Shown here piece after piece: positions 13,546-55,136 of a stretch of DNA of 64,000 bases. Source of the stretch: Podarcis pityusensis. Taxonomy: Eukaryota. Each line of letters starts with the position of its first letter. Position 1 is the stretch's first letter. The stretch lies in assembly GCA_964106645.2 (NCBI GenBank), contig OZ067039.1; one strand, 5' to 3'. Made by a program: the position numbers and the translations under genes. The notes under the pieces were generated by a model. That model saw only the letters and a list, made by a program, of their open reading frames with translations, made no database searches and had not been told where the DNA came from.

Positions 13546-14349
13546 GATGTATGGATCTTCTGCCTCTATTTTCTTCTTCTTATTATTAGAGTGTCCTGTG
13601 CCTTTTGGATTCCTGTAATGAGCACCACATTATGTTTGATCGGCTATCTTTATCTCATGCTTCATCTTGTGTAAGAATTATGAACCTCTAAGCTGTTAAG
13701 AGCTTTTAGAATGAGTACTGCAGTCAGTAACAAACTGACTTGCATTAATGCTGATTGTAGCAATAGTTGAATCTTTCTATGAATGTGTGTGATTTTTAGG
13801 TGTTGTTTGACCTGGTCAAAACCCTGTAGAATATACTTCAAGATGTAATGCTGAATCACCTAATAATCAACCAGTGCAAAATAGCAGGGAACTAGCAGTT
13901 TCTGATGCAGGATGCTATCACTTGGAAGTTTCATAGGCAGAACCATTTTTGTCAAACTATATGACTCCTTTTCCAGAGAGTTTAACACACATTCCCCTGT
14001 TCCTTCTCGCTTTTTAGATGGGGAGGAGAGTGCATTTCCCAGGTAAATTATTTCTGAGGTTTTCCCCCCCCCTTCATTTAGCCTTGAACAGCTTCAGTTT
14101 TTATTTCATTTTTTAATATAGCATGTAAGTTGCTGCAGGTGAACAAAAATTCCTAAGATTTCTCTTGCCACTGCGCACAACATAGATAAAATCACAGGAC
14201 AAAACTGGGGGATCTTCTTGTCATTGTAATGCATTGGTTCACAAAAAGTGTGTTATGAGAGGAATGAGCCTTGTGTGAAAAGCCAGTTCCCCCTTGAGGG
14301 AGTATCCATTGACTATAAATAGCTTGTGATTTGGTTTGACTTAGTTTAC

Positions 14350-14363
14350 GCACCAGATGGCGC
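14350..14363 (+). promoter_or_regulatory. CTCF motif (forward)
   Basis: GCACCAGATGGCGC vs consensus CCASYAGRKGGCRS; CpG retained. Confidence 0.6.
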
Positions 14364-14729
14364 CAAGCTCACTGGAAAGCACGAAGTCAATATTCTGTTA
14401 ATTTCTTAAGATGAGAAGGTAACTTCCACCACTGATTTTTTTTAATACATGTAGGTAAACACATGTTTATCTTGTAGCGTTGATTCCCCAACCCACATAT
14501 CTTCATACCATGCAATTAAGCAATCACTTTTAAGTGTCAGCCTCATTCATGTACACTAACTCTTCTTCACACAGTATCTGCATTTGCCCTACAATGAGAA
14601 TTACAGCAGTAGCCACTGAGTTAACATGATAATAGCTACAAGACTCTGCATAGTGAAGTTCTCTCGGGGTTAAAACTGTCTAGCAATGTGAAAGGGCTCA
14701 CAAATAATCTGACTGCCAAATACCTAAGC

Positions 14730-14844
14730 CAGGGATGAGGATCCTGTGGCAGCACTCCCAAAAGTTGAATTCTAACTCCATGATTGGGGATTGTAGGAGT
14801 TGTAGTCAAGCAATATTTGCAGGACTGCAGGTTTCTCATCCCTG
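14730..14844. mobile_element. hAT-type MITE
   Basis: TIR CAGGGATGAG...CTCATCCCTG; imperfect 8-bp TSD acctaagc/acctaaag. Confidence 0.65.
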
Positions 14845-16836
14845 ACCTAAAGCTTAAAATTTAAAAGTGACTTCTGCCTTAAGAACCTTGTTTAGGGAGA
14901 TACCCTTCTTGCCATCTCTGTGTGGCCTTGTAAGTGAATGTGTCCATCATTTGAATTGTAAGGCTAAATTGAAATATTTGTCCAGTTTATAGAGGATCTT
15001 AATATCTTAAGTTTCCATTCATGTACCACTTCCATTGAATGACATTTATGAGATAAGGAGCTTGAAAGCAAGGCACTATTTAGCTTTTAAGGTAAGGAAA
15101 GGGTACCCTGGGCTGCGTTACAAGATAGGCAACTCTTAAATGCACAGCTGTCCATCTCTGCTTCCTTACCGTTTGCTTTGCCATAAGGGTACTTTAGTTT
15201 TTGTAGCTTCTTTACTCTTTCGGTGCCTGAGGTACAGTGCTCTTATAGTTCTGAATTATCACAGTGCTAATTAGTATGATGCTGTTGCCAGAATGAGGAA
15301 GATATGATGGCCTGATTTGACTCAAGCTAGTCTTGAAGTGTCAGCTCCCATCTGCCCTATATCATTCTGGCTCTGAAGTCTTTGTTGATTGACTATAATT
15401 ACAGCATATTGGTTACTCATGGAACACCGATTTTGTGCCAGAGAATTATCAAGCATAAGCTTCAGGCATCCTAAACTATGAAAGTGCCCCTCAAAGGGAC
15501 AGGTGTAGTCATGGTATTTGAACCACCTGATGTCTCTAATTTGTTTAACTCGAGCCAATTCTATAGCTGTTGACATTTAATAGTGGGAGGAGTTAGAAGC
15601 CGGAGTCTTAAAAACTGAGGGAACAGAATGAAGCAAATCTGGTTCTCATGCTCTTGCAGGTAATCGAGGAAACTGCTCCTACTACTAGTTAACCCCCCTG
15701 ACTTTGTACCTCTCTGGATTTTAGGCTCGGGTTTACTTACAAATGCAAATATTTTTAATCAAGGCACTTGGTGGGCTATCACTAACACTATTTCATGCCT
15801 TTAGAAGCATGTCTAAAGCAGTGATTCCCAAATTGGTTTGGAGCACACTAGGGTGTGCCACTGAAGAACCACAATGTGTCTTGAAGACATTCTGTTGGAG
15901 GCAAACACTCCTGCATTTCTTTTAGAGTGCAGTGGCCTTGGACATCACTCATTCCCTAGCCTGCTCCAGGATAACACCCAAAAGGAGTAAGGATGTTGCT
16001 GCAGCCCAAACTACAGGTCTTTGCACAAAGGTTATCTGAGTACCTGCTTGGCCTAGATCTGACAACCTTGGGCAGAAAATACAAGAGAACTTTTAACTGC
16101 TTGCCAGTGCTCAGGAAAAGCATATTAATCTTCTGGAAGTCACTATATAATTCAAAATGCTGCTTCGGATTTCCTGCAATTTAGCACATCCCCTTTAACT
16201 TCTGGCTACCTCTTTAGAAATAGAGCATCGGAAATAACCAGATTATTCAACAAGGCTTTCAGTCCTTTCTGTAGAAATCTGAATGAGGGGTTGAGCTGAA
16301 GTAGAATACTTTGGATACATTATTAAGACCTGTTCCCTTTATATGATTCCTCTCCAGATAACTTGCTCACGTGCCCACCGTAAGCCAAAAGAGCAAGCCA
16401 TGAAACAGGGTGAGGCAAATGTGATGTGTGTCCAAGCTACAAAAGGAAGTTTGTAGCCACTTGCAAAACAAGTTCCCTTGCGGGTGTGTTCTGACCCAAA
16501 CATGAATTTCACTGTGGAGTAGGAAGAATGGCAGATATAACTCAACACTGCCCAGGAACATGAGATGGGAAAGGAAGGGCAGTGACTGAAGTTGAATGTA
16601 GAATCGGGCATTTGTGATTGTTACAAGAGCTGTGGGCAACTTGGTGACTCTGCTCCTATTTATCCTTTGTTTTCAGTGTATTAAGATTCTCCACCCCAAA
16701 GTAGGACTTTGTCCTGTTTTGAACTTGCTTTTCCCAAGTCAAATCTCAGTAGCAGGTTATTTTCTTTTAACTTATCTCTGTAATGTCTCCCTGCCGCAAG
16801 TCCACATGCATCAGGCATTCTGGTTGTAGGCTCCTC

Positions 16837-17430
16837 TTAAAAGCCGACGGGCCTTGTTTTCATCTCTGCTTTCTTGAAGGAGTACTTCTGATTGGTCCTT
16901 TTGTCAACCAGAATGTACCATGTTCCCCAGTAGATGCCGCTGGTCACCCCCGTGTAGCGTCCGTGGTGGTACTTCCCATTGAGGTTGGCTGCCAGGCAGG
17001 AGTCGAACCACCAGCCGGCCCCATAGTACGCACCGCAGTTGCCCATGGGGTAGTTGTCGTTGTCGCTGTCCCAAGTTGTGAAGCACTTGTGATCGTGGTT
17101 GTAGTTGCGGCTGTAGCTCAGGGCATTGCCTGCACTGCCTTGATACTCCCGGGCTGTCAGGCGATACTTGTGGGCCTCGCTGGCCACTTTGAATTTGCGG
17201 TAAACAGCATGGCGCTTGACGCCATGCCAGTCCTCCAACTCTATGCGCACAACATGCTGGCCCAGGCGGGTTAAGCTGTGGAGGTGCTCATTTCCCAGCC
17301 AGTGCTCCCCTTGCAGGCTCCCAAATCCCTGCCTGTACTCCTGCCAAGTGCGGTTGAAATCCACAGAGCCATCCTGCCGGCGCTGGAACACGGTCCACCC
17401 GCCACCATCCGTGACCATGTCGCAGTAAGC
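16837..17430 (-). CDS. FGL2-like gene, last exon: fibrinogen C-terminal (FReD) domain
   Basis: attgccag|GCT TAC TGC; AYCDMVTDGGGWTVFQRRQDGSVDFNRTW...YNHDHKCFTTWDSDNDNYPMGNCGAYYGAGWWFDSCLAANLNGKY...GIYWGTW...KTRPVGF*; the NHD..FTT.D.DND.YP.GNCG.YY..GWWFD.CL.ANLNGKY signature matches recalled FGL2 sequence. Confidence 0.95.
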   Translation of the reverse strand, partial: AYCDMVTDGGGWTVFQRRQDGSVDFNRTWQEYRQGFGSLQGEHWLGNEHLHSLTRLGQHVVRIELEDWHGVKRHAVYRKFKVASEAHKYRLTAREYQGSAGNALSYSRNYNHDHKCFTTWDSDNDNYPMGNCGAYYGAGWWFDSCLAANLNGKYHHGRYTGVTSGIYWGTWYILVDKRTNQKYSFKKAEMKTRPVGF

Positions 17431-18099
17431 CTGGCAATACACAAGACGAAGGTTAATCGGCAGAAGCACTGGAGCACCTGAAAAAGAGCCCTTGCTCCAG
17501 CCCACGGAATCAGGCTGTGACATCATGCTCTCCTAGGAAATTTTCCACTCTGCAGGCAACATCAAGTGCTTAAACAGGTTTAATGGCCTTTGGCTGCTCT
17601 AAGGAACTATTTTCATCAGTGGGGAACAGGGCTAAGGAGCTCCAGAAGTGAATTCTCATTACTCTCACTAAATAACATTTGAAAACCATTCAGATATGAT
17701 TAATGGTAAGTGGCAGAAACTCACCGCCTGCCTGTTCATGCGCCATTTTGGAAATTTTATTTTCAGCAGTTTAGATTTACTTATTTTTGATTCTGTGGTG
17801 TCTGTTCTGTGCAGCATTAGTGCAGGAGTGTCCCATCTGGGCATGTATTTATTTTACTAATTAATCAACTGAGTAGTGGATGTTCCCGTTTTAAGAACCA
17901 CACACTTAGCATTAGGTTTTTGAATTTTCACTGGCTGCACATAATCTTTCTTGCCATGGGGAACATATCTAACCAGGTTTTTTTTTCTTGATAGGGGACT
18001 TTGCAAAGTCCAAGTCTAAAAGGAACTTGGGGACACACTTTGCTCATGGGGAGAGAGGGCCATAAATGCAATGTTAAAAAGGATAATTCTCACCTACTA

Positions 18100-18325
18100 C
18101 AGTGGTACATTGGTTCTCGAATGTCTCCGTTGACAAATGCCGAAAACCCCCGAAGTAAATGCTTCCATTTTCAAATGTGCCTCGGAAGTCAAATGGCTTC
18201 CGCTGTGTGTTTTTCAATTTTCTCAATTGAATTGAGGCTTCTGTATTGAGTTTTTAGTTCTTGAACATTTTGGAACTTGAACGGTCTTCCAGAACGGATT
18301 ACGTTCGAGAACCGAGGTCCCACTG
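18100..18325. mobile_element. Tc1/mariner-type MITE in the FGL2-like last intron
   Basis: TA|CAGTGG..ggttctcgaa ... ttcgagaacc..CCACTG|TA. Confidence 0.8.
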
Positions 18326-18755
18326 TACCACCCTTTCAATATATTTTGATGAGCAGGTGTATGAAGGTTCTAATCTGCATCAATGATGGCAAGGCAGGAT
18401 ATTTACTCCAGATTCATTAATGCAAAGTAAAAGCTGTATGATCTTAACAAGGGAAGCAATCTACAGTGAGTGAGTGGGACTTACTTCTGAGTAAGAATAC
18501 ACAGGATTGCATAGCAGATTATCATTCACAATAGCAATGCAGAGGAGGATGAATAGAGAATGCCCACTTTAGGAGCAAACCAGTGCAAAGTTTATGTATG
18601 GATACAACTTTTACATGCAGTAACACAAACCAGTGGAGCAAGGAGCTGAATGCATATTGCAATTGTGCTACCTTTGGCCGAACAGAGACCCAGTTGGCTG
18701 CATGCATATCTTATTTACTCCATTAGATAAGACACCTCAAACCTACCTACCTTAC

Positions 18756-18877
18756 CTCAAAGTGTTGACGGAGGGGAATGGGTTGGATGGTGTATATCCC
18801 ATTGTCTCGGATGCCCTGTTTATGGATCTCTGCACAATCCCGAGGATACGTGTGCTCAGATTTTTCAGAGGGTTCCA
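18756..18877 (-). CDS. FGL2-like gene, exon 3 (start of fibrinogen domain)
   Basis: tactttcag|TG GAA...TTT GAG|gtaagg; (V)EPSEKSEHTYPRDCAEIHKQGIRDNGIYTIQPIPLRQHFE with the classic PRDC...GIYTI motif; phase 1->0. Confidence 0.92.
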
Positions 18878-20192
18878 CTGAAAGTACATGGGAACATAGA
18901 AAGCTGACTTAGACTGAATTGGACCATAGGTCCATCTGGAAGGCACAGAAAGATGTAATAAACCACAGGGTCCTGGCAATGGAAACAACAGGTCCTGGAC
19001 ATATGACCTGTCTTGCAGGGATCTTTCTGTGATATGGCACCTAGAAACTGTTACACTTATGCTAAAAAGGGGACAAAGAGTATCCTGCAATATGAAGGCA
19101 GGGGCAAGACATACATACTTCTATGAGAGTAGACTTAGATGTTTGGTTGGAAAGCAGAATTGCACCTCCAGAGCAATCTTGGGGCACTGCTGCCTGCTTC
19201 AACATGCTATTGGATATGGCAATCAAGGGAGGTCTCCCCAAAGAGTTAAGAAATTATCATGTTGTTCTGGCCAATGTGTATTGGGCTTCACACACTCAGA
19301 CTGCCTTCAAACATAATGTACAATAGGTGGGTCCTAGGCAGAGGTGGGGAGTTGCATTTGCACACCTGGAGATCCATGTGTGTAAGGCATCATTTTCCTC
19401 CTGTGACTTGACCAATTTGAAGTGCGAAGCCATTTCCTGGCTTCCCCCAAAGCCCATATTTTCTCCTCCTTGTTTTGGCTTCATTTTAAATTGTAACCTT
19501 CTGCACTAAAGCACCATGTATATTGATGGTGTTATATAAAAAATGTGTCATCTTAAGGAATGAGAGACATTGTATATTTAATTAATCTTCAGCTGTTGTG
19601 GTCTAGCATAATTTAATTTGGGTTGCAAGTTGTTTATGTTTATGCTGCCTCTGTTGCAAAGAATATATATATATATATAATCTGTCTTTGTTGTTAAATA
19701 TTAAAAATTAATTATTATATATTTTATTTGTTTGTAAGCCGCTCAGGGAATGTTTATTGAGTGGCTATATAAATACTAAAGGCACTGGAAGCGGTGAGGA
19801 ATATCCAAAGGCTCTTTTGCTGGGTGCAAGTGAGGGCATCCCTTTGCCTTTTTTTTCTTTGAAAAGGTCAGTTTATTTTTTAAAATTGTATTTCTCTCTC
19901 AATAAATGGGATCAATTTACACCAGTTCTTGGGCTGGAGTAAATTTATTCAAAGTTTTGGCGTGCATCTAGGGTACCAAGAAGGATTCAAATCTTTCAGA
20001 CCTAAGCCTTGCTGTCACACTCCTTTGGGGTACACACTGCTCTGACACACACCCTTTGTGGCCTTACTGATGATGGAGTCCCAACACCATCAGGGACACA
20101 AGATTATGGACCATGATGGAGAGAGGGGACCTGGTCTCCCTCTCAGGTTTCATACGATTGTAGTCTAAGTTACATAATAGATTTATACTAAC

Positions 20193-20237
20193 CTGTAAGT
20201 GCTGGTGTCTCCTCAATCTTGTGCTCTTTCCCTATAT
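20193..20237 (-). CDS. FGL2-like gene, 45-nt micro-exon 2 (linker)
   Basis: tatctcccag|ATATAGGG...CTTACAG|gttagt; phase 1-1, open: (D)IGKEHKIEETPALT. Confidence 0.6.
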
Positions 20238-21921
20238 CTGGGAGATAATTTGGAGTCTGTGAGTGAGATTGCTGCAAAGCTCTTGAGAAAAGCCACTGCC
20301 CACTCTATTCTCAATAGTCTGTGACTGAGCTAGTTCAATGCAGTGTTATTATACAGATTTGCTAAGTGTTTGGATAACTTCCCCCAGGCATTAAGGGGGC
20401 TTCGACACAAGGGGGCTCTACATTCCAAGTGGAACATTCAGGTCCATTTTTTTCTTGTGAGTGTCATTGGCGCATGGCCCCCTGCAACACACACCATTCT
20501 TGTTTTTGTTTCTCTTAGGGTGCCTTGGGACTCCCATTATTTTGTGGGATGGATTCAAGCACATACCAGAACCTGAGGTTTGCACAGTTAAGGTGAACTA
20601 AAGGGCTCTGTCACCTTAGGGCAACAAATCTGCTTTTTTTAAAAAAAGAACCAGACTTATAGCAGTTTGAAAAGTGGCAGGGAAGTGCATTGAAAAATAT
20701 GGGATGAACAAACACCTAACAGGAAACACCCCACAAACAAATCAAGATGAATGCAGGCCCAGTGCTCACAAATGTCATCGATAACCACCCCACAAACCAT
20801 GCTCAATAAAGACCTGGATATGAGACAGGGATGGGGAACCTGTGGCTTTCTTGGATTCCAACTTCCATCAGCCCCAGCCACCTTGGCCAATGCCCAGGAA
20901 TGGTGAGAGTTAAAGTCCAATAACACCTGGAGGCCTACAGTAGTTTAAAGTGGGAAACACTGAAAAACACGTTCCTGCATTTCACATCTGAGGACCCAAA
21001 TGTAAGCCCTAGGCATCTAAGGCTGGGAAGTGGATATTTTCTGTCATCAGCAGCCTTCCCTAAGATTTCACCAGCTCTCCTCCCCTGCCACTAGATAGAT
21101 CCAGGAGCCACAGAGTTCCCTGTGTGCAGGCGACGAGATGCCCTGATTTCACAGCATCTGGTGCTACCACTAGCTCTGCCTTTTTGACTCTGCTTCTGGC
21201 AGCAAAATAACTTGGGCAGGCATTGTGCCGTCTGCTCCCATAACAGCGTCTTTGCATCACTGTCCCTCTTGTTCTTCTCTTGCTCTGGTATAATCAGGGA
21301 GGATGTGGAGTGGGAGAGGGCACTATCTGAAGGAAATGATGAACAGGGGGGGGATTGTGTCCAACAGAAAGAATTGCATCATCGGTCAGCCTGATAGCCA
21401 TAAATGTCAGCCGCAAACTCTTCAAACATATTGCTCATCAATATGCTCATCCATCTGTCCGGAAATTCCTGGCGGAACACGGACTGTTGAGATGTCAGAC
21501 ATCAAAAGAGAAAACGAGTGGAACATCTCAAGCAGAAGAAGTGGGGAGGGGGAAGGAAATAATGAAAAATGGTGGAGGAAAAAGCCAGGCAGAGGCGGAA
21601 TGAGGACTCTGAGGGTTTGAAGGCTTTGCCTGTCCTCATTGAACCAAAGTGGGAGACAAGACACATTCACAGGACCACTTGAGTGCATGGTGACTTTGAT
21701 TCAGCAGTGTGGAGCTGGTTAGGTGACTGCTTTGGTGCAAAGCAAGCACTGGAATTTTCTCCATGGTTTATTCTGGCCAGGATGTAGGTTCATGACAATG
21801 CCAAGCTCAGCTCACTTGGTATGTGTGCTAAGTTGACCTTGTGAGACTTCAGCATGGGCTTAAATAGGAATATGACCAAGGGTGGAACAAAGGAGCCACA
21901 GGAAAACACCCTGGAAGCAAA

Positions 21922-22218
21922 ATAAATTAAAACAATTCTTTTAAAAGATAGTTAAAAAGACTCTTCTTAAAAGCCTAAAAACTCCCTTAAAAGAATCAAA
22001 TCTTCAAAAAAGTTATATGATCTAAGAAAGTCTTTAAAAGAATCCTTCCGAAAGAATTAAAAACTTACAATGTAGCACCTTAGAGACCAACTGAGCAGTT
22101 TTAGGTATAAGCTTTCTTGTGTGTGCATGCTTTTTAAGAAGAGCCTTTTTAACTATCTTTTAAAATAATTGTTTTAATTTATTTTGACTATGGCAGACCA
22201 ACGCGGCTACCTCCTTGA
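21922..22218. mobile_element. Penelope-like element fragment with inverted arms and 14-bp TSD
   Basis: accctggaagcaaa at 21908-21921 and 22219-22232; contains gtagcaccttagagaccaac and gcagaccaacgcggctacc, recalled as squamate Penelope terminal motifs. Confidence 0.65.
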
Positions 22219-22531
22219 ACCCTGGAAGCAAATCAAGATGAAGAATAAATGTTCATTGTCATAATAACCGCCTCATAAACAGAATGAGCATTCAGAATGA
22301 ATGCTCAGTAAAGACCCGACATGGTCCAGCCACATCATAAGATTTGCGCAAGGAACCCTGTCTCTTTTTGCCTACCTGAACTCCAGGTGCAGCATGACCA
22401 AAGCAAGGCAAGAGGACTGCCTTGGCGGGGCATGGCCTCCTTCCCTCCCTGCTCAGCACTCCAAGCTCTGTGTAGGGGGCTGTATCCCAGCAGACTGCTG
22501 TGAACTATTTACAAGGCTTTATTTAGAACTT

Positions 22532-22671
22532 CATAGAATTGTAGAGTTGGAAGGGACCACGAGGATCATCTAGTCCAACCCTCTGAAATGCAGGAATCTT
22601 TTGTCCAATGTGGTGCTCGAACCCACAACCCTGAGATTAGGAGTCTTGTGCTCTACTGACTGAGCTATCCC
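22532..22671 (-). mobile_element. tRNA-Lys-head SINE with CR1-like tail (same family as 6457)
   Basis: Reverse complement: ggatagctcagtcagtagagcacaagactcctaatctcagggttgtgggttcgag...gggttggactagatgatcctcgtggtcccttccaactctacaattctatga. Confidence 0.8.
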
Positions 22672-22689
22672 TCTTTTCTCCCAACGAAA

Positions 22690-22925
22690 AATAGTAAAAA
22701 CACAATACAACATCACACACTAAAAACTTCCCTGAACAGGGCTGCCTTCAGATGTCTGTTAAAAATCACACAGCTGATTATGTTTTTGACATCTGCTGGG
22801 AGGGCATTCCACAGGGTGGGCACCACTACCGAAAAGGCCCTCTGCCTGGTTCCCTGTAACCTCACCTCTCACAACGAGGGAACTACCAGAAGGCCCTCGG
22901 AGCTGGATCTCAGTGTCAGGGTGGG
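22690..22925 (-). mobile_element. L2 LINE 3' fragment
   Basis: Encodes RAFSVVVPTLWNALP-type L2 C-terminus on the - strand; same family as 24420, 51025, 52385. Confidence 0.75.
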
Positions 22926-23128
22926 ACTATGGGAATACATAGGATTCCCAGGAGATCTCCCCTCCAGGCACTTGCCAGACAGATCTGCTTAGCTTCAGCA
23001 AGGCTGCTGCACCATGAACCTTCGGATCACACCCCAGCCCAACCTGGACTGTTTGTGAAGAGAGAGAAGAATCTCACTCTTCACAGTCAGGCAGAATGGG
23101 AAGTGGATAACCCCCCCGCTGTACTCAC

Positions 23129-23663
23129 CAAGAATGGATGCCTTCAGGACTGATTCGCTGCAAGGCAGCTTGCAGCCAGAGAGGATCCCCAGCAGCAGGG
23201 CCACCAAGGAGCTGAGCTGCTCCTCTAAGCGGTGCAGATTAAGCCGGCTCTCCTCCTGCAACTTCTGTAGGCCCGATGCCATGGAAACCACTCTGGTTTC
23301 CACCAAGCTGAGTCGGTCCATCAGGGTCCTGGTCCTGGAAGAGCTTTGTTTGTTGAGCTCTCCAGTGTGCTTCAGGATCTGCTTGAACTCCATCCGCTGC
23401 TCGCCAGCAGGGACATCCTGCACCTCCTCAGGTACTGCTGGCTCCTCAGGCCCCAGGACGTGGAGCTTGCAGCTCCCCAACCCATCACAGCCACCTTCCG
23501 GAGAAGGGAGAGGCATGGCCACCAGGGACCCTGCGCATGCTGGGTTGTCATCTCTTTGGCTGCACTCGGGGCTGTCTGAGTTCAGGCTTCCTGACTCTCG
23601 CAGAACCATAAAGAGGAAGCCAAGGCAACAAAAGCACTTGCTGAAGCGGGGGAAGAGTTTCAT
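23129..23663 (-). CDS. Fibroleukin (FGL2)-like gene, exon 1: signal peptide, Cys motif, coiled coil
   Basis: ATG in gaaaATG context; MKLFPRFSKCFCCLGFLFMVL signal-like; GGCDGLGSCKLHVLGP resembles FGL2 GKCEEAGECPYQVSLP; heptad-rich LMDRLSLVETRV...LEEQLSSL; donor CTTG|gtgagt, phase 1. Confidence 0.85.
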
Positions 23664-24419
23664 TTTCTCTCCTTAATGCCTCCCGAGGGGGTGGGAAAGG
23701 CACACGCGACATGCAAGAAGGCACAGGCTGGAAGCTACTGCAACAGAGCTTCTTCTGTCTCCACAGGCAAGCTGCCTCTCTAGGCCGGGAAGGCCACTCC
23801 CAGGCTGGGTCAGGGCAAACTGCCTCGCTGAAGAAAAAGTGTGGAGATTGGGGAGCTGCGAGGGAAAGGAGGAGGGAAAGTAGAGCGGCACACAGATAAA
23901 GGAGCATTTGAGACTGTCCAGCAGATTAGCATGTCATGGGCAATTAAAGCTAGGCCCCTTGTGGGAGGCAGTGATTAGAGTCTGGCTTGAGTGAGCTTTG
24001 CTCTCCAGCAAGAGGGCTTTGACTTGAAAGGCCTGTAATTTGCCTTGACATTAAAGGCACGGAGGAAATCGCCCAAATGCTAGCAAGGGAGCTGAGTAAA
24101 AAGAGCGGTAATCTCTCGCAGTGCTTGCTGGCCTTTGGCACGGCGTGGCCACCCACCCACCACCCATTAAGCAAGGCATGTGCTCAGAGGCCTCTTCACG
24201 CTCCAAGGCCAGAAGGCGTCATGTGCACAGACCTCCCATGCCAGACTTGACAGGCCACTTCACCACTCCCCAGCTTTCCGCAGTTGCACCAACCAACTCT
24301 CCCTCCTTTGGGAACAGCCTGGACCTCAGATCTCTAAGGCCTCAGATCTTTAGAGCGCTTTGATACCACTTTAAACAGTCATGGCTTTTCTCCAAAGAAC
24401 TTTGGGTGCTGTGGTTTGT

Positions 24420-25664: not shown

Positions 25665-26920
25665 GAATGCTGCACTGTTCCCCCAGTTTATCTTCAACAA
25701 GCTGTTTAATGTACAGAGATTGGAACATGGTCCTCGTGGACCATTTGGCCCACTTAGCTCTGTGTTGTCTAAACACTCTGGCAGTGGCTGTCCAGGGTTT
25801 TGAGACAGGGAAATTCCCAGGTCTACCTGGAGATTGAAGCTGGGACTTTCTGCAGACAAAGCACGTCCTCTGTCACTGAGCTACGGCCCTTTCAAAAAGG
25901 AATGGATTGAATTATAATGATTATCATGCTTGATTCTTCCATCCAGCTCTCATGTACAGTCTGGCTTTCACGACAACGCCAGTTTCTTTATCACACTCCC
26001 AACACGGAAGACCATTTCACGTGTCCATTTCCCCCAACCATGTGCGGTTGGGAAAAGCGTGCATTTTCCTGGGAACCATTAAAATGATGAAGTACCTGGT
26101 CTTCCCATTGCAGTAAGATGCAGGCCCCAGAAAGGAAGGAAATGAGCAGAGACGGCAGCAAGAGGTGCTACTGTGTGCACACTCCCATTTACTCCACATC
26201 CAGTGTGCTCCCACCTCTGGGTGTATACACCACATTTACTGTGATCCGTTTTTATTCTGTACCTATCCTGTTGTTTCTTATGAAGTTTAGTGCATTGATA
26301 TGTTTTCCCCCAAACCAGCTTTGATCCGAATTGAGTAGAAGAGCAACCCAGCTGTGTTTTAAGCTAGCAACTTGTGCACAGCCTACAGCTGCCTATTAGC
26401 CCGGACCCTTGGCTGTGTGGGCTGGGGCTGATTGTTGTCAGATTGCAATGGCATCTGGAAGTGCCCCATGCCAGCCACCTCTGATTTAACCCAAACAGGT
26501 ATAGCAGTGAGAGAGCAGGGACATCTTGGGGATAGTCCATCATCTAGTTAGGAAGAGGAACCTAAGAAAAGGAAAAGGGTATAGGAGGTACTATGCAACT
26601 CATGCAAACATATGCCAAAGGCTGCTTTACGACTTACAAGCAACAATCTTTTTTATTTATTTATTTAGACAAGAATACATTCACCCAGAAAGGTTCGATT
26701 CTAGGCTAGACGAAAAATCCACAGAACAGATCCAAGAAGGGGAGAGGGAAGACCCAAGCTGCAGCTTCTTATTCATTGCTTAAGGAAAAGGATCTAAGCC
26801 AGTCTTTATGCTGGGGGGCTTAAAAATTACTCTCTTTTTTGGGGTCTAGTCTCACTACAAAGGTTTTGGCTTGTTCTTCAAAAATGTTGAGATTCACAAG
26901 GTGTAGTGGCTTCTGTTTTA

Positions 26921-26934
26921 CCACTAGGGGGACG
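26921..26934 (+). promoter_or_regulatory. CTCF-like motif (forward)
   Basis: CCACTAGGGGGACG, with mismatches at the 3' end of the core. Confidence 0.45.
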
Positions 26935-27912
26935 CACAAATGATCCAATATGGTCATACCAAGTTGGGAAAACATCTAGCCCCCTCTTAGCCAACTTGAT
27001 CAGATTTCTCCCAAATTTCAGCCCTTGACATAAAGCCGCCTGGGGGACTCGTTGCTTCTTTCCTGCACATACAATAGAAAAACAAGAGTGAATAATGGGC
27101 AGTGACAAGGCAGGACATCTTTTTTTTCTCTCTCTCTCCCCACCCCGCCGTCCAATTTGTCTTCGAGGCTGACATAGGAAAAAACCCCAAATTGCCGCTC
27201 TCGCCTTGCACAGTTTTACCACAGTATCCTGAGAAGCATCTGGTGTGGAGCTGATAGCACAGGGGGGGTTCAGGCAGGAGCCCCAGCCGGAAGCCGAAGA
27301 GTTAGCAGCGGTTGGGGACCCACTGCTTCTGCCAGGACGTCAGACAGGAAACCTTACAATGGCTCTGAAGTGAAGGCTCTCTGGATCCCTGCCACTGTCT
27401 GTTCAGAGAGAGGCAGACACACCAGCCTCCCTGCCAGGGACAGCAGAAACCACTCAGAACCATTCCCCGAGGGCCATTTTGTGTGGCTCAACCAGCAAAC
27501 CATTGCGGCCATAGGAAGGCACTTTGGGTAGCTAGAATAGTAAGAATTACCCTCATTATTCCAGCCCATAATCCTTACCCTTATGTGCATAGTGACAGCC
27601 ATGTGCCAAGAACCCAAGAGCATCATGTAGCCTCTTCTCCACATGCCTAGGATATGCTCCTAAGCAGCTGCAGGCATGCGTAGCCTCCCGGGAGGCCTTC
27701 ATCCCATTACGAAAGTCTGTCCAAGTGAAACTTTGAGGAAACAGATCGTTGAAGCAAAATTGCATTCCCTTGAGTTCACCCACCCGCCTCCACTTATTTC
27801 TGAGACCAAGCTCCAATGTGCACCAGAGCCTTGAATGAGAGCACCAAATATGTGCCAGCAGAGCTCAGTGGGATACCCCTGTGTTGCCCACATATCTGTG
27901 TGGAGGAGGAAC

Positions 27913-54936: not shown

Positions 54937-55136
54937 NNNNNNNNNNNNNNNNNNNNNNNNNNNNNNNNNNNNNNNNNNNNNNNNNNNNNNNNNNNNNNNN
55001 NNNNNNNNNNNNNNNNNNNNNNNNNNNNNNNNNNNNNNNNNNNNNNNNNNNNNNNNNNNNNNNNNNNNNNNNNNNNNNNNNNNNNNNNNNNNNNNNNNNN
55101 NNNNNNNNNNNNNNNNNNNNNNNNNNNNNNNNNNNN
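54937..55136. other. Assembly gap (200 N)
   Basis: Run of N; true length unknown. Confidence 0.99.

Follow-up and report, generated by a model that had tools for sequence, protein, structure and literature searches.

An Apparently Unstudied, Ancient Sister Gene of FGL2 beside RPN1 in Podarcis pityusensis

What kind of gene sits beside RPN1 in Podarcis pityusensis? The stretch analyzed here (64,000 nucleotides of contig OZ067039.1, assembly GCA_964106645.2; hereafter the window) contains a four-exon gene whose product ends in a fibrinogen-related domain (FReD) similar to that of fibroleukin (FGL2). A preliminary description of the locus proposed that this is a separate and probably uncharacterised sister gene of FGL2, kept in reptiles and lost in mammals, and a candidate secreted immune-regulatory or coagulation protein. 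Our analysis supports the first part of this proposal and revises much of the rest. The gene is an ancient and apparently unstudied sister of FGL2, and we consider its identity and ancestry as a branch of the FGL2 family close to certain.

The window gene is not the orthologue of FGL2. Podarcis lilfordi, a species of the same genus, holds both genes: the orthologue of the window gene (CAI5767365) lies on a 123 Mb chromosome and a separate FGL2 on a 72 Mb chromosome. The latter encodes a 439-aa protein annotated as "Fibrinogen like 2" in two exons (613 and 707 nt) and runs antisense inside a gene for a 973-aa protein, which we take for CCDC146 by its size and position rather than its name. Nesting of FGL2 in CCDC146 is the known arrangement. 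Teleost FGL2 copies adjoin FAM185A-, FBXL13- and LRRC17-like genes. Maximum-likelihood analysis of the exon 4 region separates the two genes: the window gene groups with its orthologues (support 100/95), FGL2 proteins group together (100/98), and lizards, crocodilians, frogs, lungfish and ray-finned fishes are represented in both clades. The clade of the whole family (window gene, FGL2 and tunicate proteins) is supported at 100/95 against invertebrate FReDs. The window gene thus stands outside the FGL2 clade, with four exons beside RPN1.

Judged by alignment scores and shared features, FGL2 is nevertheless the nearest relative of this gene and its putative sister. With FGL2 proteins, exon 4 scores 248–261 bits, whereas no other FReD family with a solved structure exceeds 173 bits (ficolin 173, angiopoietin-2 157, FIBCD1 156, FGL1 156, ANGPTL6 149; by family, ANGPT 147–157, ANGPTL 141–149 and fibrinogen chains 120–147). 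Lizard FGL2 scores at most 180 bits against the same families. In an exhaustive protein search with exon 4, single-domain FGL2 and tunicate matches rank next after the orthologues. Ficolins, FIBCD1, angiopoietins, FGL1, ANGPTL2/6 and the fibrinogen chains share the FReD fold and calcium loop with the window gene, but their stalks are unlike its own and their FReDs contain several more introns. By contrast, FGL2 and the window gene both have a signal-like start, an N-terminal three-Cys motif, a coiled coil and a CxxxC pair before a phase-1 intron. The FReDs of both are largely intron-free, have identical disulfide spacing (29 and 13 residues) and YNHD and GI(Y/F)WGTW features, and are 58% identical over exon 4; 78 of 106 near-invariant FReD positions are common to FGL2.

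Unlike FGL2, the window gene lies on another chromosome with other neighbours, and it contains a cassette linker exon and an extra phase-0 intron inside the start of the FReD. This intron, before the second FReD cysteine, is kept in lizard, alligator, Astyanax and lamprey orthologues. FGL2's first coil with its CxxC (mouse Cys94/97) and the Ser89 segment are absent from the window protein. Residues W302, R307, T397 and K425 are diagnostic of the window gene relative to FGL2, and lizard orthologues carry 1–2 sequons compared with 4–6 in FGL2. Tunicate proteins of the family (Ciona savignyi H2ZEJ6, Clavelina, Styela) resemble the window gene in the N-terminal Cys motif, GIYWGTWY and W302/K425, but differ in a much longer stalk (590–920 aa). 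Stalks of about 800–2800 aa also separate the N-terminal motif from the FReD in many teleost FGL2 copies, lungfish FGL2 and tunicate relatives, unlike in the 440-aa form of amniotes.

Several points weigh against this placement. The trees contain invertebrate FReD outgroups only and no non-FGL2 vertebrate FReD. The N-terminal motifs line up with those of FGL2 in a global profile alignment of the N-terminal halves, but with a probability of 6–10% (E 0.0008–0.006), and BLASTP of the N-terminal half against FGL2 gives no significant match. The bit scores place the window gene outside the ANGPTL family.

The proposed gene model, four phase-compatible exons encoding an uninterrupted 431-aa protein, proved correct at its positions (Table 1). 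The four minus-strand exons add up to 1296 nt, enough for 431 codons plus the stop; donors are GT, acceptors AG and the phases 1,1,0, and no internal stop interrupts any exon frame. We searched this model exon by exon and ran full-length analyses on database proteins. Protein identity to Podarcis models is 97–99% for exon 1 and 97.5–100% for exons 2–4. The predicted features are likewise all present: a signal-like hydrophobic stretch at about residues 7–23, the N-terminal Cys motif (C59/C65), a coiled coil of about 50 residues (heptad stretch at ~111–163, 69% hydrophobic at a/d positions), CKLPC at 164–168, and a complete FReD. Four cysteines between the hydrophobic start and the coiled coil are conserved. 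A low-confidence structure model shows a single long helix at 114–161. The C164/C168 pair is invariant in 17 orthologues. Pfam Fibrinogen_C spans exon 4 (E 1.5e-70), with the domain start in exon 3; the domain is complete with both disulfides (C208/C237 and C366/C379 invariant in 20 orthologues), and comparison of the orthologues identifies one invariant sequon in it. Exon 1 has no match in Pfam or the ESM Atlas, and Pfam detects no collagen repeat in it.

Two further observations concern the protein. Codon 350 of the 431-aa form encodes an extra, apparently unpaired cysteine beside the calcium loop that occurs in lizards, alligator and the turtle remnant described below and not in amphibians or fish. 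Lacertid RefSeq models start with a further 81 aa, an N-terminal extension that we rejected: it is out of frame in the window, and the contig from sequencing run X1 would start ~18 nt upstream of the ATG.

Table 1. Features of the FGL2-related gene in the window
Feature	Position	Strand	Content
Exon 1, coding part (535 nt)	23129..23663	minus	Hydrophobic signal-like N-terminus, Cys34/43/59/65 region, coiled coil, C164-x3-C168; phase-1 donor
Exon 2 (45 nt)	20193..20237	minus	Frame-preserving cassette exon; short linker, alternatively spliced
Exon 3 (122 nt)	18756..18877	minus	FReD start with C208; phase-0 donor
Exon 4, coding part (594 nt)	16837..17430	minus	Remaining FReD and stop; C237, C366, C379, DxDND calcium loop, N260 sequon, extra C350
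Probable long 3′ untranslated region (~2.7 kb)	14105..16836	minus	Ends near AATAAA at 14105; extent suggested by the length of contig 7 of run X5 and by signal positions
Upstream promoter-proximal conserved block	23860..24045	minus	Alligator 86% over 58 nt; turtle 75% over 186 nt

To examine splicing, we compared four public runs with positions 17300–23290 of the window; the three that yielded spliced contigs are only guessed to be RNA. We read these contigs as transcripts because they are intron-free and represent two splice forms. All three junctions occur at the predicted positions, with CT..AC ends, within single contigs of two studies (runs X1 and X5), and exon 2 is skipped in a contig from a third study on another species (run X7). 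The RefSeq isoforms X1 and X2 differ by 15 aa, matching exon 2, which is also present in alligator. One raw-read RNA run (X23) gave no reads on the exons. Relative to alligator, exons 4 and 3 show dN/dS of 0.066 and 0.063 and exon 1 of 0.30, all well below the value near 1 that would have counted against the preliminary description. These data confirm that the gene is real, intact and spliced, with exon 2 optional, and the FReD is under strong purifying selection. The linker region varies among tetrapods. The alligator locus (L001:13750-14615) contains two linker exons, one of 27 codons that also occurs in amphibians, lungfish and coelacanth and one of 15 codons that also occurs in lizards. 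Lizards are without the former and amphibians without the latter, and no remnant of the 27-aa linker exon was detected in lizard intron 1.

The preliminary description presented a reptile gene; the orthologues are instead spread across the vertebrates. All major lizard groups have them, as do alligator, frogs, a salamander, caecilians, lungfish, coelacanth, reedfish, sturgeons and many teleosts, with a low-quality model in elephant shark. Lampreys have two genes in the window-gene clade (L012:10001-27814 and L005:10001-20800), and no lamprey gene of the FGL2 clade was retrieved. Across the orthologues, from lamprey to lizards, exon 4 identity ranges from 68 to 92%. RefSeq models such as XP_028575001, XP_034960874, XP_008103499 and XP_019355099 share clade, intron positions and neighbourhood with the window gene, and the zebrafish orthologue is si:ch211-157b11.8 (ENSDARG00000060413). 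The exhaustive exon 4 search added no further clade member but recovered the tunicate relatives (Ciona, Clavelina, Styela). One protein labelled Lampetra planeri (P0023) shares 81% identity with a percomorph orthologue and 54% with the lamprey one; it is probably teleost contamination and was left out of the trees. The second lamprey gene is flanked by a 7tm_1 receptor gene and an AAA_18 gene.

Because the lamprey genes fall inside the window-gene clade, the simplest reading is that the first whole-genome duplication separated the window gene from FGL2, before the lineages of lampreys and jawed vertebrates diverged. The blocks on human chromosomes 3 and 7 (in chicken, 12 and 1) are parts of a single 2R paralogon (PMC3826523), and tunicates have one FGL2-family member. 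The free tree speaks against this origin: its tunicates stand beside FGL2 (94/62, unsupported), a position that would date the split to before the vertebrates. A duplication within vertebrates is not rejected (p-AU 0.386).

Within amniotes, mammals, birds, snakes and sea turtles each seem to have lost the gene independently. The suggested loss in mammals is consistent with our searches, since no mammalian orthologue occurs among the matches in the protein collections that we searched. Retention in reptiles is patchier than proposed: the same collections yielded no snake or bird orthologue either, although an intact tetrapod copy would be expected among the first thirty matches and bird and snake FGL2 are plentiful there. 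As crocodile, gharial and tuatara orthologues are likewise missing from these collections, some absences may be annotation gaps. The loggerhead turtle has a remnant at the same place next to RPN1: the frame changes within exons 1 and 4, stops occur and cysteines are lost. Codon 128 of exon 4 is the common breakpoint in predicted proteins from four sea turtle species, so the lesion is inherited and is no assembly slip. On the turtle branch, nonsynonymous and synonymous changes stand at 27.5:18.5, compared with 8:20 on the lizard branch. Angptl9 sets a precedent, as another FReD gene that mammals have lost and other vertebrates retain (PMC5237311). The window gene is not Angptl9, which is present in chicken (chromosome 3) with neighbours that map to human 2 and 6.

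We then considered what the product may do. FGL2 chains are linked into oligomers through cysteines 94/97 and 184/187; the prothrombinase activity of FGL2 is associated with Ser89, and its immunoregulatory function resides in the FReD (PMC5356913). Of these inter-chain pairs (mouse numbering), only the second has a counterpart in the window protein, C164/C168. Since this pair alone is present and the Ser89 segment has no counterpart, a secreted, disulfide-locked FReD bundle is likely and a prothrombinase is not. The protein would be secreted and its coiled coil would assemble several chains; like its counterpart in FGL2, the C164-x3-C168 pair at the end of the coil would lock these chains through disulfides between them. 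Further clustering may come from the N-terminal Cys motif. Such a bundle would display several calcium-binding FReD heads and cluster one conserved partner on cell surfaces or in the matrix. That the product is a secreted multivalent ligand seems to us very probable.

The FReD of the window gene evolves more slowly than that of FGL2: its identity from lizard to frog is 87% compared with 78%, and across tetrapods 87–88% compared with 76–82%. So slow a rate suggests a fixed endogenous partner rather than a pathogen. In zebrafish, the orthologue is among the most enriched genes in sox17:GFP+ cells at 3 and 8 somites (log2FC 7.4 and 8.9), and it is raised 7.65-fold by retinoic acid and lowered by an RAR inverse agonist (PMC8608873). 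In grass carp, the orthologous protein has been reported from skin gelatin (PMC10456007). The most probable setting is developmental or epithelial signalling, in endoderm-type cells and downstream of retinoic acid. Among the readings considered, a developmental or tissue-signalling ligand ranks first, by a judgment only slightly better than even; taken simply as developmental or tissue role versus immune role, we regard the question as evenly balanced. Some facts tell against the developmental reading. The functional pointer is one dataset from one fish, and sox17:GFP also collects dand5-positive cells, which leaves the cell type uncertain. The AlphaFold model built from 20 orthologues is poor (pLDDT 47). 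A broader scheme, which we offer tentatively and think rather unlikely, is that the ancestral role of the FGL2 family was developmental and that the window gene kept it as a retinoic-acid-induced early-endoderm signal acting through a putative conserved receptor; the gene would then have been lost independently at least four times in amniotes (mammals, birds, snakes, sea turtles) while the neighbouring enhancer and CTCF site stayed. If so, comparison of lineages that kept the gene with those that lost it would point to the receptor and the trait.

The alternative that survives best is an immune-regulatory ligand like soluble FGL2, which would dampen antigen-presenting or T cells via an inhibitory receptor. 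The mapping of FGL2 immunoregulation to the FReD (PMC5356913), together with the 78 near-invariant positions shared there, is compatible with this idea, as is an element with E-box, GATA-, ETS- and RUNX-type motifs 3.4 kb upstream of the gene. However, a conserved CTCF-like site separates this element from the promoter, the FReD changes more slowly than that of FGL2 in tetrapods, unlike most immune ligands, and the family, with tunicate and lamprey members, is older than Fc receptors. The expression data found are embryonic only. The immune part of the preliminary suggestion thus gained no direct support, and we consider it possible but unlikely.

A soluble pattern-recognition lectin that binds acetylated microbial sugars, like ficolins or FIBCD1, is less probable still. 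Ficolins are the top matches among solved structures, the calcium loop is intact and some sturgeon models are auto-named ficolin-2-like; yet FGL2, which has no entry among the solved-structure matches, beats ficolin by ~85 bits. The histidine of the ficolin Cys-His pair has a role in the acetyl site, and this pair aligns to Cys-Leu in the window protein. The window protein also has no collagen stalk, and the strong purifying selection and single copy tell against this reading.

A role in coagulation, whether as a clot component or as a prothrombinase in the manner of membrane FGL2, we find very improbable. Fibrinogen chains have a coiled coil closed by a CxxxC pair before the FReD, a likeness in favour of this reading, but they score only 120–147 bits. 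Membrane FGL2 is reported to cleave prothrombin (PMC5356913), but the segment with mouse Ser89 and Cys94/Cys97 has no counterpart here, and a serine five residues before the CxxC occurs in only 1 of 14 non-mammalian FGL2s, which weakens the coagulation part of the preliminary suggestion. Finally, a relocated lizard FGL2 orthologue or a decaying, unexpressed copy, as the many database entries reading simply "fibroleukin", the empty run X23 and the turtle decay might suggest, is refuted by the separate FGL2 in the same genus and the same species sets, the separate clades, spliced contigs from three studies and dN/dS of 0.06–0.30.

Whether the gene is uncharacterised, as had been supposed, depends on the meaning of the word. 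No paper treating it as a paralogue in its own right turned up in our literature search, which most subscription papers lay outside; it is, however, already predicted in RefSeq and Ensembl under the machine-given names "fibroleukin-like", "fibrinogen-like protein 1", "fibroleukin" and "ficolin-2-like". Fish and amphibian transcriptome matches often belong to this gene when they are called "fibroleukin", "fibrinogen-like protein 1" or "ficolin-2", and because its orthologues carry these generic names, functions of FGL2 and FGL1 are wrongly transferred to it. The frog "fibroleukin" of PMC13696840 was considered as an orthologue and rejected, as its neighbourhood identifies it as true FGL2. The window gene represents an overlooked branch of vertebrate FReD proteins that is older than jaws, more conserved within tetrapods than FGL2, and testable in zebrafish and Xenopus. 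Its repeated loss in amniotes, with a dated sea turtle remnant, provides a natural experiment. It shares the architecture of FGL2, and Angptl9 is an earlier case of an FReD paralogue lost in mammals, so it is a retained paralogue and no new kind of system.

The neighbourhood of the gene is conserved. RPN1 (Ribophorin_I match) lies on the plus strand with its stop near 12.86 kb, tail-to-tail with the window gene, and its poly(A) signals (plus strand, 13223 and 13540) are ~600 bases from the probable 3′ end of the window gene (minus strand, ~14105). The alligator orthologue is also tail-to-tail with RPN1, and in turtle the remnant occupies the corresponding site. The Astyanax orthologue lies between Rab7-like and GATA genes, while the Xenopus and lamprey loci have no informative neighbours within 10 kb. 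GATA2 is outside the window, and the RPN1-GATA2 context is taken from orthologous loci and the literature; this linkage is kept from fish to human (PMC1988811). The location of the gene in this interval adds to its interest, as the enhancer there is studied in blood development.

A conserved noncoding element at 27035–27446, ~14 kb beyond RPN1 and 3.4 kb upstream of the window gene, is 74–77% identical to alligator and turtle. It contains a CATCTG E-box followed by TGATAG (spacer 9 in lizard, 6 in alligator and turtle), ETS-type CCGGAAG and CAGGAAA motifs and a RUNX-type ACCACA. Its motifs and position make it a candidate for the GATA2 distal haematopoietic enhancer. It persists in turtle despite the decay of the gene. 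The CTCF-like site CCACTAGGGGG at about 26915–26935, conserved in alligator and turtle, lies between this element and the gene promoter. Elsewhere in the window, positions 54937–55136 are a run of 200 N.

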